DNA from: Macrostomum lignano
Lineage: Eukaryota
Length of the DNA: 64,000 nt
Direction of reading: 5' to 3'
NCBI GenBank assembly: GCA_002269645.1
Contig: NIVC01000708.1
Span: 1 to 64,000, forward strand
The notes beneath the pieces were generated by a model. That model saw only the letters and a list, made by a program, of their open reading frames with translations. It did no database searches and had not been told where the DNA came from. The position numbers and the translations under genes were made by a program. Shown piece after piece: positions 47,901 through 50,381 of this stretch. Numbering within the stretch: position 1 is the stretch's first letter; every line of letters begins with the position of its first letter.

Positions 47901-50381
47901 CAGGATGATCAGGATGGTTAGAATGGTCAGGATGGTCAGGATGGTCAGGATGGGATGGTCAGGATGGTCAGGATGGTCAGGATGGGATGGTCAGGATGGT
48001 CAGGATGGTCAGGATGGGATGGTCAGGATGATCAGGATGGTCAGGATGGTCAGAATGGGATGGTCAGGATGGTCAGGATGATCAGGATGGGATGGTCAGG
48101 ATGGTCAGGATAGTCAGGATGGGATGGTCAGGATGATCAGGATGATCAGGATGGTCAGGATGGTCAGGATGGTCAGGATGGTCAGGATGGGATTGTCAGG
48201 ATGGTCAGGATGGTCAGGACGGTCAGGATGGGATGGTCAGGATGATCAGGATGGTCAGGATGGTCAGGATGGTTAGGATGGTCAGGATGGTCAGGATGGT
48301 CAGGATGGTCAGGATGGGATGGTCAGGATGATCAGGATGGTCAGGATGGTCAGGATGGTCAGGATGATCAGGATGGTCAGGATGATCAGGATGGTCAGGA
48401 TGGTCAGGATGGTCAGGATGGTCAGGATGGGATGGTCAGGATGATCAGGATGGTCAGGATGATCAGGATGGTCAGGATGGTCAGGATGGTCAGGATGGTC
48501 AGGATGGGATGGTCTGGATGGTCAGGATGGTCAGGATGGTCAGGATGGGATGGTCTGGATGGTCAGGAATGTCAGGACAGTCATCAGTGCCAGGATCAAT
48601 GGTATTCCGAGGCTTCCCAACCAATCCGCAGGCAGCTGAAGCACCCCATCGTGGCCTGCGCGCCGTTTGCTGCAGCCTCGGCTGTCGGCAAGGAGCGCTC
48701 GAGCGCCATCGGCATCACTTCGGCGGTGATGGAGCCTGATGGTCAGCTAGCGGATGTGGACCTGCGCCAGGGCAAGCACATGGCCGGTGCGCTCATCTAC
48801 CGAGGCGCGGCCAAGACAGCCGGCATCGAGCAGGCGCTGCTGTCGCTGCGCGAGCGCGGTCGAGTTCAGTTCGTTGACTGGGCGCCGTCCAGCTTCAAGA
48901 CCGGCCTGTCCGAGCTGCCGCCGCTAGCCGTACCGGACAGCGGCATCGCCGGGCTGCCCCTGTCTGTGACGCTGGTCAGCAATCACTCGGCCGTGGCGTC
49001 ACTTTTCCGCGGCCAATCGACCGCAGTCAGGAAGCTAGTCGAGGCCGGCAGCTGCTTCCTGCGCAGCTACGAGACGAGCGCCGCCAATGGTTCCGAGGCC
49101 GGTGGCGGGTTGGAAGACAGCGGCTCTTCGCAATCGGCTGGTCACAACGTCGGCGGCCGCGGTGGAAACATCGTCGGCCTGCTCCAGGAGGCCTCCGACC
49201 ATTTGGAGGGCCTGGCGCATGTGTACAGCAGCGAGCTTCCGCCGACCCCCACTGGCCAGAAGGCGAACAGCGAAGACTCCGGCGGTCCCAAGCGGATCGT
49301 GGCGTCACCAATGTCGAGGGCGGCAGCCGCCAAGCCGCGCCGGGCCTCGCTGGGTCGGGAGGCGCTGTTCCCCATCGGGCCAAGTCGATCCGGCCGAGTG
49401 CAAGCGGACGAGGAGTCAGCAACCCCGAGCAAAGTCGCCTCTGTGCAGCAACAGTCGACAGGAAGCGGCACCGACGAACGATTCGGACCATCGCAGATGC
49501 AGGAACTGGACTCGCCGGGCAAAGTCGCCTCTGTGCAGCAACAGTCAACGGGAAGCGGCACCGACGAACGATTCGGACCATCGCAGATGCAGGAACTGGA
49601 CTCGCCGGGCGAAGAGGCAGTGGGCTCTTCAGAAATGAAGCCAGAAAGCCAATACTCGCCGGTTGCTATGCAGCCGTCGCAGGAGTACGGTGCGACAGCG
49701 TTCAGCGAAAAAGAGACACTGACAATTGAGAGATCCGATGTGTCCGACAATATGCCGGAGGGAGCGGCGTCGCCGCAAGATAGCGCGGTCACGCAAGGCC
49801 AGCCGGTGACGCTCACGCACACTCAGTCATTCTCCACGCCGACCGCTGACAGCGAAGGAGCCACTCCGCTGGCCAGCGCTCCGCGGCAGGATTATAGCGA
49901 ATCAATATCGAGGCGGCAGCAGAAGCGAGGCGGCGGCAGTGGTGGCTGCTGCCGAAAGCGCAATAAACAGCCGTCGAAACGGTCCGGCGCCCATCAACGG
50001 TCGCGGTCGCAGAATCACGCCAACTCGTGGGGTGCCAAATCCAGCAGGTTCTTCCTGTACAGCGGCAGCAGTAGCAGCCAAGACGACATGCTGGTTGGCA
50101 CCAGGGACGGCTATTCGTATCTGACCTATCATTCGAGTGCCACTCACAGTTTCAGCTTCCTGCCCGCCAACGTGGTCAACTCTCAGGTCGAGAGCGACGC
50201 GAAATCCGAGCTTGACGAGGCCCTCGACTACGCGTCTGTTGGGTCGAGTGGCGCAGCTACGGATAGCGCAACTGATCTGGACGAGATCATACGCGACTGC
50301 GTGCCCGGACCAATGCCTGTTTTGACCAGCGTCAAGAGAATGGTGCAAAAGTACAATGAAATGTTTGCGAAAGAAGGCTGA
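44996..50381 (+). CDS. Highly divergent alpha-tubulin-like protein with a long C-terminal extension (about 850 aa)
   Basis: Exons 44996-45013 (MSFNEN), 45168-45384 ([22 protein letters not shown]...PRSIFLDTDPTCI), 45588-46155 (DEIRVGPYRELF, NYMRG, HSTGGGTGSG, HLNR), 48632-50381 (GKHMAGALIYRG, QFVDWAPSSFKTG, SNHSAVA, then the tail). Alpha-type motifs; phases consistent; no internal stops. The true start may lie further upstream, as the frame is open back to an AG at 44931-44932. Confidence 0.85.
46195..48575. repeat. 9-bp (GGATGGTCA) plus 5-bp (GGATG) satellite filling the tubulin intron; ~1.2-kb higher-order duplication
   Basis: Rare variants recur 1225 bp apart (GGTTAGAATG 46691/47916; GGATTGTC about 46967/48192; GACGG 46993/48218). 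Confidence 0.95.

Follow-up and report, generated by a model that had tools for sequence, protein, structure and literature searches.

What becomes of a tubulin whose C-terminal tail is swapped for a long disordered arm? The tail of a tubulin is as a rule a short acidic stretch that is heavily modified, and it is the main handle for motors, microtubule-associated proteins (MAPs) and modifying enzymes. The question is raised by the gene BOX15_Mlig018576g4 (copy g4 of Mlig018576) of Macrostomum lignano, a free-living flatworm; the gene lies within positions 1 to 64,000 of contig NIVC01000708.1 (assembly GCA_002269645.1), the whole 64,000-nucleotide stretch being referred to below as the window; over 5.6 kb the window matches the locus that encodes the protein model P0134 at 100% identity. 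Base composition and the repeat-filled intron had at first pointed to a protist (apicomplexan) genome, an idea rejected on the strength of matches of 97-100% to M. lignano, the tubulin-like ORFs at about 45.1-50.4 kb matching one of its hypothetical proteins at 97%. A reading made from the sequence alone had seen the acidic tail replaced here by an extension of about 380 residues, and had proposed a tubulin with a built-in MAP or tether. On balance we lean towards the view that Mlig018576 g4 is a real, translated and selectively maintained gene, which would encode a lineage-specific 850-residue alpha-tubulin derivative with a built-in projection arm.

In the corrected model four exons encode 850 amino acids (aa), with the tubulin body at aa 1-469 and the tail at aa 470-850 (381 aa, all in the last exon). 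The exon boundaries were chosen as the splice sites that keep the alignment with alpha-tubulin in phase:

44996..45013, forward strand: exon 1, ATG and MSFNEN (donor AAT/gtaagt; P0134 begins MSFNENARPF)
45168..45384, forward strand: exon 2, tubulin N-terminus with the T1 loop GQAG and the H1-S2 loop (acceptor cccag/GCC, donor ATTG/gtaagc)
45588..46155, forward strand: exon 3, GTPase domain with GGGTGSG, H7 and the degenerate T7 loop GTMMCNIANICSN (PF00091, E 5e-29; residue table; donor TTTAA/gtaagt)
48632..50381, forward strand: terminal exon, 1,750 nt, with the tubulin C-terminal domain, insertion, H12, tail and stop (acceptor ccgcag/G, which fits the exon 3 phase; PF03953, E 3e-22)

All three introns start with GTAAG and end with CAG, at a G+C (GC) content of 0.39-0.54, and the splice phase of exon 2 yields ...DPTCIDEIRVG, which aligns with ...EPTVIDEVRTG of alpha-tubulin. 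The true start is the ATG at 44996 and not the upstream ATG of the long open reading frame (ORF); 5′ of it a diverged copy of the gene, described below, shows a 2-nt indel, as would be expected of 5′ untranslated region (UTR). A start at ATG 45105, giving an 865-aa model, was rejected, as the alignment with alpha-tubulin begins at its residue 23 and the annotated exon junction MSFNEN/ARPF fits better. The terminal exon measures 1,750 nt in the genomic sequence, which agrees with the 1.75 kb of the sequence-only reading.

The frame beyond H12 runs for 381 codons (49236-50378) to a TGA at 50379-50381 and ends in ...MFAKEG with no EEY/F terminus, much as the tail of some 380 codons had been described. 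The open frame is no by-product of high GC, since the remaining five frames over the tail stretch have 5-10 stops each and not one of 20,000 shufflings of its bases (mean 11.9 stops) left the tail open. GC at the third codon position of the tail (GC3, 0.69) exceeds that at the first (GC1, 0.59) and second (GC2, 0.54), much as in the body (GC3 0.77), and the GC of 0.61 in the coding sequence (CDS) compares with 0.31 over 1 kb past the stop. When the tail alone was searched, the word-indexed search of 5.8 billion clusters found no homologue, and exhaustive HMMER over 1.84 billion representatives returned only the gene itself and two repetitive multi-stretch matches (P0127, P0128).

A second, diverged version of the gene, the homeologue, is present on contigs NIVC01002544, NIVC01004532 and NIVC01003880 (L001-L003). 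The terminal exon is open in every genomic copy but L003; in L001 and L002 it has the same stop as the window copy, and the sole indel relative to the window is 9 nt long, in frame and situated in a Gly run. Between the tail and that of the homeologue there are 16.5 synonymous changes over 273 sites (S) and 12.5 nonsynonymous ones over 867 (N), which corresponds to a ratio of nonsynonymous to synonymous divergence (dN/dS) of 0.23, with 0.24 and 0.22 in its two halves; the synonymous excess has a P of 3e-4. Mismatches make up 2.5% of the tail; in the 3′ flank they reach 7.1%, with 42 gap columns in addition. For the tubulin part of the terminal exon dN/dS is 0.105. L003 (NIVC01003880.1, gene g2, terminal exon at ~11426-13200) has four indels of 1-2 nt in short G/GC runs, apart from which it is one substitution from L001. 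The indels were set aside as a sign of a pseudogene; they are probably uncorrected long-read assembly error, which also explains the 312-aa model of L003. Conservation of the tail frame in relatives, on which the sequence-only reading had made the extension depend, was thus found in the homeologous copies, which keep both frame and stop. By these comparisons the tail is under purifying selection. Its composition, the frame and stop kept in the homeologue, and a C-terminus common to the sister family described below mark it as coding, and the view of it as a genuine coding extension of a tubulin-fold protein stands on the same three grounds.

The part of the terminal exon from the insertion onwards comprises the following elements, for which structure was predicted with AlphaFold2 (AF2) on the terminal exon alone, from an alignment of 40 sequences in which the tail has no alignment depth; confidence is given as the predicted local distance difference test score (pLDDT):

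49071..49187, forward strand: Gly/Ser-rich loop between H11′ and H12 (alignments; AF2 pLDDT 34-41, no secondary structure)
49170..49223, forward strand: H12-equivalent helix IVGLLQEASDHLEGLAHV (AF2 helix over exon residues 180-197; shows EA..D...L...Y, as H12 of alpha-tubulin does)
49236..50273, forward strand: disordered stretch of the tail at aa 470-815, weakly acidic and rich in Ser, Ala, Gly, Gln and Pro (AF2 coil, pLDDT ~28-46; composition)
49431..49610, forward strand: tandem 90-nt (30-aa) duplication, KVASVQQQSTGSGTDERFGPSQMQELDSPG x2 (Tandem Repeats Finder (TRF), 49425-49614, period 90, 2.1 copies, 96% matches)
49911..50012, forward strand: basic patch RRQQKRGGGSGGCCRKRNKQPSKRSGAHQRSRSQ with Cys-Cys at aa 707-708 (net +10 in a 25-aa window)
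50274..50372, forward strand: amphipathic C-terminal helix-turn-helix, consisting of DLDEIIRDC, a CVPGPM turn and PVLTSVKRMVQKYNEMFAK (AF2 helices at exon residues 548-556 and 562-580)

The loop from the Y of ...FLRSY to the EAS of H12 is 39 aa long (ETSAANGSEAGGGLEDSGSSQSAGHNVGGRGGNIVGLLQ) and has 11 aa in alpha-tubulin, so that the 28-aa Gly/Ser insertion noticed earlier is borne out as a 28-aa surplus, both by alignment and as predicted coil. Its dN/dS is ~1, a value resting on 4 substitutions alone. The H12-like segment, after which the frame had been seen to continue, is likewise recovered, as a predicted helix at 49170-49223. Upstream of the insertion the model contains the C-terminal part of tubulin at moderate confidence. 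Downstream of H12, exon residues 198-547 are predicted as coil with block-mean pLDDT of ~28-46, and the tail has 16% Ser and a net charge of -7; its description as disordered therefore holds for all but the terminal helices. Those two helices are predicted confidently, with mean pLDDT of 82 and 89 in the last two 10-residue blocks, where the earlier reading had an amphipathic-looking end, and the last 60 codons have a single nonsynonymous change relative to the homeologue. That the terminal helix might be the true H12, with the whole tail as an insertion, was rejected, as H12-like helices are predicted right after the insertion in both Macrostomum families.

The near-exact duplication in the tail is confirmed by TRF and by the repeat units themselves, as 49431-49520 and 49521-49610 differ by 2 nt and encode 30 identical residues. 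L001 also has two 90-nt units, there differing at 6 nt (3 aa), and unit 1 of the window is nearer to unit 2 of L001 than to its unit 1. With two units in both homeologues, the duplication predates the homeologue split, and the comparison suggests that unit 1 was homogenised in the window copy; such homogenisation is unremarkable in a genome this rich in tandem arrays. The reported Cys-Cys/basic patch is likewise present, with GGCCRKRNKQPSKR at 49941-49982 (aa 705-718) inside the net +10 region. The Cys pair is kept in the homeologue, and the spacer preceding it varies by a change in Gly-run length (GGGSGG vs GGGGGGGGG).

The body to which this arm is joined belongs with the alpha-tubulins. Both tubulin domains pass the Pfam cut-offs (Tubulin PF00091, E 5e-29; Tubulin_C PF03953, E 3e-22), the best 60 PDB sequence matches are alpha chains throughout (E 4e-76 to 2e-71), and the named relatives are alpha-tubulins without exception, at 29-35% identity. 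The alpha-specific S9-S10 loop aligns with alpha-tubulin without gaps, its alpha-type length being kept. The class placement is that of the best sequence and fold matches, as distinct from a tree with beta, gamma, delta and epsilon tubulins. The body nonetheless departs from alpha-tubulin far more than ordinary isotypes do. Its identity to a fish alpha-tubulin is 31.9%, as compared with 77-84% for the trematode, fungal and plant proteins, and of the 192 positions at which nine ordinary alpha-tubulins all agree it keeps only 91.

The losses are unevenly placed. The nucleotide pocket retains T1 (GQAG), T4 (GGGTGSG), N206 and N228, with changes in T3 (N101F) and T2 (E71D). The worst-kept regions are the longitudinal face formed by T7, H8 and S7 and the outer surface at H11-H12, and in the T7 loop (~aa 244-260 of the 850-aa model) and H8 the residues N249, D251 and E254 are replaced by M, N and N, respectively. 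Judged from these residues, the protein is a tubulin fold with an intact nucleotide pocket that has lost the catalytic residues of T7. In alpha-tubulin, E254 is the glutamate that triggers GTP hydrolysis in the beta-tubulin beneath. Human alpha-tubulin carrying E254N or E254A polymerises with GTP hydrolysis abolished, producing stable microtubules that grow without catastrophes (LaFrance et al. 2022, PMC8764682), and Mlig018576 is, at the level of this residue, the natural counterpart of the engineered hydrolysis-dead E254N tubulin. The engineered proteins are single-site mutants of a normal tubulin; Mlig018576 has Asn at position 254 together with changes at N249, D251 and many other sites, and the E254N outcome is therefore not directly transferable to it.

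The only close relatives found lie in M. lignano itself and form the Mlig033756 family (P0003, P0129-P0133; A0A1I8J262, PAA92860.1 and others; 742-835 aa), whose bodies are 45.5-47% identical to that of Mlig018576. The AF2 body of the representative P0003 has a pLDDT of ~90 and a template modelling (TM) score of 0.88 to alpha-tubulin chains, and the top 50 Foldseek matches of the model have TM scores of 0.86-0.90 and are A/C or similar chains, which are alpha by labelling convention, the subunit not being named in the output. The T7 positions N249, D251 and E254 are occupied by S, G and G, respectively, and at alpha-invariant positions 29 derived residues are common to both families.

The two families also have the same layout: a disordered insertion before H12, an H12-like helix, a long disordered tail, a Cys-plus-basic patch and a confident terminal helix, which in both ends in ...K-[IM]-[LV]-x-K-Y-[QN]... 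The insertion of Mlig033756 is larger (~100 aa vs the 28-aa surplus in Mlig018576), and its tail is shorter (disordered over ~160 aa), very acidic and Gln-rich, with a poly-Ala stretch. Its patch SSRWCLRRRSKSRRPG lies ~30 aa before the terminal helix and has one Cys, located within RWCLRRRSKSRR, where Mlig018576 has two. BLASTP between the tails of the two families gave nothing significant, and they are unalignable outside the last 20 residues. Those 20 residues, PVLTSVKRMVQKYNEMFAKE and PAIAEAEKILMKYQRSLGGQ, are each other's reciprocal best gapless match in the whole proteins, both being C-terminal, with a BLOSUM62 score of 25; among shuffled tails that score was reached anywhere by 0.13% (P 0.0013) and at the end by 0.005% (P 5e-5). 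The terminal match and the 29 joint derived residues imply that the extension and the helix predate the split of the families. Conservation of the C-terminal end, which the earlier reading had suggested looking for in orthologues, is accordingly seen in a paralogous family, which keeps the terminal helix along with the Cys-plus-basic patch; from these alignments the terminal helix is the constrained piece of the tail.

The models of Mlig033756 (g1-g3) differ among themselves at the C-terminus (...GKHPQSLKPRKF in P0130, ...KYQRRLQLIKPS in P0132) and in poly-Gln and poly-Ala lengths, and P0133 has an 80-aa N-terminal addition. The annotation of that family probably needs the same kind of checking as that of Mlig018576.

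The full 850 aa of Mlig018576 are encoded by no database model, the available ones being 599, 641, 312 and 790 aa long. GenBank has PAA78082.1 at this locus (P0134, 599 aa) and PAA47215.1 and PAA57025.1 at the homeologue; P0001 has 641 aa. Both P0134 and P0001 exit the frame after KVASVQQ, continue in the +1 frame and stop at 49638 (region 49431-49638; L001 11813-12020). When P0001 is mapped to its own locus, its CDS omits 10 nt inside repeat unit 1, and a skip only 10 nt long is no intron. It falls at the same place in both copies though the skipped bases differ, so that it seems to derive from a single transcript or alignment artefact within the duplicated units. The apparent frameshift was thus rejected as a loss of the tail frame: the annotation skips 10 nt and the genomic frame is intact. 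UniProt A0A1I8HZ98 (P0136, 790 aa), a product of a separate annotation, does reach the genomic end, ...KYNEMFAKEG. As the public models are wrong or incomplete, proteomic and comparative studies built on them would miss the tail.

What the arm might do can be outlined as follows. The body would act as a tubulin-type assembly module, or one binding beta-tubulin, that is incapable of driving dynamic instability, and any polymer containing Mlig018576 subunits would be stable rather than dynamic. In tubulin the C-terminus exits H12 on the outer face. Should the protein join a tubulin-type polymer, the tail would leave H12 on that face and stand out from the polymer as the projection domain of a structural MAP does. 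The terminal helix would then be a docking site for a partner, and the basic patch might serve as an electrostatic anchor for acidic tubulin tails or membrane, possibly aided by S-acylation of the Cys residues. The long disordered part could be a spacer in which sequence would count for less than length and composition, a role consistent with the dN/dS of 0.22-0.24 and with the tolerance of indels and of the duplication. As for the original proposal of a tubulin with a built-in MAP or tether, the part that stands is the coding, constrained and disordered tail with a terminal helix; the function as a MAP or tether belongs to this conditional scheme.

Several observations weigh against a maintained tubulin with a projection arm. 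An identity of 32%, N101F and an altered longitudinal face mean that pairing with beta-tubulin or entry into a lattice may fail. The selection estimate comes from one homeologue pair and 29 substitutions, and its P is only 0.011 when the expected synonymous fraction is set conservatively. The match between the terminal helices consists of 3 identities and conservative changes over 20 residues, and the likeness of the Cys/basic patches between the families is compositional. Finally, the GenBank models end the protein at 49638 via the 10-nt skip, and A0A1I8HZ98 drops 49443-49538 (one repeat unit) and 49806-50012 (207 nt, the whole basic patch), so alternative processing is possible.

The first of these points leads to the strongest competing explanation, which we regard as possible though rather improbable, namely that the protein is a pseudo-enzyme of tubulin fold which has ceased to build microtubules. 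The body would then be a scaffold, a module that sequesters or caps beta-tubulin, or a partner of the sister family, and the tail would carry the real activity. The divergence just described is what such a protein might be expected to show: 32% identity to alpha-tubulin, where fish, trematode, fungal and plant alpha-tubulins share 77-84%, only 91 of 192 alpha-invariant columns kept, the longitudinal face (T7/H8/S7) and H11-H12 worst preserved and N101 of T3 lost; moreover, the 29 invariant columns in which the two M. lignano families agree on a derived residue suggest a new common constraint. Yet T1, T4, N206 and N228 of the nucleotide pocket and the alpha-type length of the S9-S10 loop are kept, the fold of the Mlig033756 paralogue is predicted confidently and the body has a dN/dS of 0.105. 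Divergent tubulins, among them the ciliate ALT/BLT proteins, still build microtubules.

The last of the points is addressed by in-frame splicing, by which the mature mRNA would lack 49443-49538, 49806-50012 or both, giving a shorter tail with the same end helix. A0A1I8HZ98 is without exactly these two segments and reaches ...KYNEMFAKEG, and each begins with GT, ends with AG and has a length divisible by 3. Their donors (GTGCAG and GTGACG) and GC (0.62-0.64), however, set them apart from the three certain introns, which have GTAAG and 0.39-0.54; both segments are as well conserved as other tail sequence, with an in-frame indel only, and a GenBank model reads through 49443-49538. In-frame pseudo-introns in low-complexity coding sequence are, besides, a common product of ab initio prediction. 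Those of A0A1I8HZ98 are, from their sequence features, probably prediction artefacts, and we hold such splicing to be unlikely.

About equally doubtful is that the Cys-Cys pair by the basic cluster is S-palmitoylated and that the tail pins microtubules of this tubulin to membrane, a proposal that goes back to the sequence-only reading and works by analogy. The S-palmitoylation signal MLCCMRRTKQ of GAP-43 suffices to send reporters to membranes (PMC7768372), and CCRKRNKQ of Mlig018576 resembles it in having a basic cluster with a final KQ immediately after Cys-Cys, a likeness of short motifs alone. The pair is kept in the homeologue, and the Cys of the paralogue lies inside its own RWCLRRRSKSRR segment. 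On the other hand, the GAP-43 signal is at the extreme N-terminus and the Cys pair of Mlig018576 is internal, at aa 707-708 of 850; the paralogue has one Cys and not two, and the spacer before CC is variable (GGGSGG vs GGGGGGGGG). The patch fits a bipartite nuclear-localisation pattern, or a binder of neighbouring acidic tubulin tails, equally well.

If the pieces of the scheme are put together in full, they would describe a small Macrostomum family of hydrolysis-dead alpha-tubulins carrying their own MAP, in which the acylated patch and the docking helix attach the lattice to a partner or to the plasma membrane; that all of this holds at once seems a slim chance. Were it so, incorporation would yield intrinsically stable microtubules (a natural E254N) coated with a brush of disordered arms. 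M. lignano has aflagellate sperm with cortical microtubules, as well as epidermal microtubules, and a protein of this kind would suit a fixed array, for example in the sperm cortex or the epidermis.

That the gene is instead a decaying duplicate, its long frame a neutral read-through into GC-rich sequence, is very improbable in spite of the extreme divergence of the body, a tail without homologue in 5.8 billion or 1.84 billion proteins, the frame-breaking indels of L003 and the truncated annotated models, given a dN/dS of 0.105 in the body and 0.23 in the tail, the same stop in both homeologues, 0 of 20,000 tail shuffles open, L003 indels in short G/GC runs of a copy otherwise one substitution from L001 (the pattern of assembly noise), and a terminal helix common to a family whose body is only ~46% identical.

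For the preferred reading, a maintained alpha-tubulin derivative with a projection arm, known systems offer partial precedents. Compared with canonical alpha-tubulin (TUBA1B, yeast Tub1; PDB 4FFB_A, 6TIS_A), Mlig018576 has the same two tubulin domains, GQAG, GGGTGSG, alpha-length S9-S10 loop and H12, and differs in its 32% identity, E254N, N101F, the 28-aa loop surplus, the 381-aa tail and the missing acidic tail and terminal Y/F. In Chytridiomycota and Neocallimastigomycota, beta-tubulin variants have low-complexity C-terminal extensions of up to 1,100 residues that are not conserved across species and have gene-structure support (Findeisen et al. 2014, PMC4202323). These variants, like Mlig018576, carry a long low-complexity extension after the tubulin body; they are, however, fungal beta-tubulins for which no conserved terminal helix is described, whereas Mlig018576 is animal and alpha-derived, with a body that is also highly derived. 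The likeness is one of kind and not of descent, and an independent origin is expected, since Mlig018576 is alpha-derived and metazoan.

The same survey (PMC4202323) lists several alpha-tubulin groups without an acidic tail, namely the mammalian Tub1H orthologue group and those of Babesia/Theileria, Entamoeba, insects and Naegleria, as well as Paramecium beta-tubulins that lack the P-loop and are thought to be structural. The alpha-like (ALT1-3) and beta-like tubulins of Tetrahymena are lineage-specific divergent isotypes without polyglutamylation and polyglycylation motifs. The tail-less alpha-tubulins and ciliate ALTs mostly have short or missing tails and, within the text consulted, no reported T7 loss, in contrast to Mlig018576 with its 380-aa arm and T7 loss. 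Divergent tubulins whose C-terminus is extended or otherwise non-canonical are thus an already known kind, and Mlig018576 is a lineage-restricted oddity with precedents for its main feature. The combination is new: an animal protein, a derived alpha body with a natural E254N-type loss, a disordered insertion before H12, a tail under measurable purifying selection and a terminal helix conserved across two paralogous families. A literature search found no paper on the Mlig018576 or Mlig033756 genes.

The interest of the case lies in the handle of tubulin being swapped for a 380-residue arm with a conserved predicted docking helix, in a protein that has also lost the residue making microtubules dynamic. 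It would be a natural experiment in which microtubule stability and attachment are hard-wired into the subunit, and transgenesis and RNA interference exist in M. lignano, which makes the idea directly testable.

Two further features belong to the gene:

46196..48577, forward strand: minisatellite of intron 3, (TCAGGATGG)n, ~2.4 kb (TRF period 9, ~289 copies)
50460..50465, forward strand: AATAAA, the likely polyadenylation signal, 79 nt past the stop

The minisatellite occupies most of intron 3 (46156-48631, 2,476 nt), and its comparison with the homeologue gives shifted repeat alignments only. The array generates spurious ORFs (MVRMVRM..., GWSGWSG...), one of which enters the terminal exon, so that the start in the ORF list, 48432, is too early. 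Another array, four copies of a 45-nt unit (94% matches), occupies 44520-44699; it precedes the start codon by ~300 nt, which places it within or close to the promoter or 5′ UTR. In the window (1-64000) as a whole, tandem arrays number more than 50, have periods of 2-400 nt and make up a large share of the sequence, and ORFs longer than 150 aa outside the tubulin gene are nearly all minisatellite translations without a credible Pfam match. The tubulin gene is followed on its strand by a syntaxin/SNARE gene (Pfam Syntaxin_2, SNARE), located at ~53507-56096 of the window (L004 17512-20101) and at 15850-17995 of L001; its presence at both homeologous loci indicates that the local gene order is conserved between the copies.

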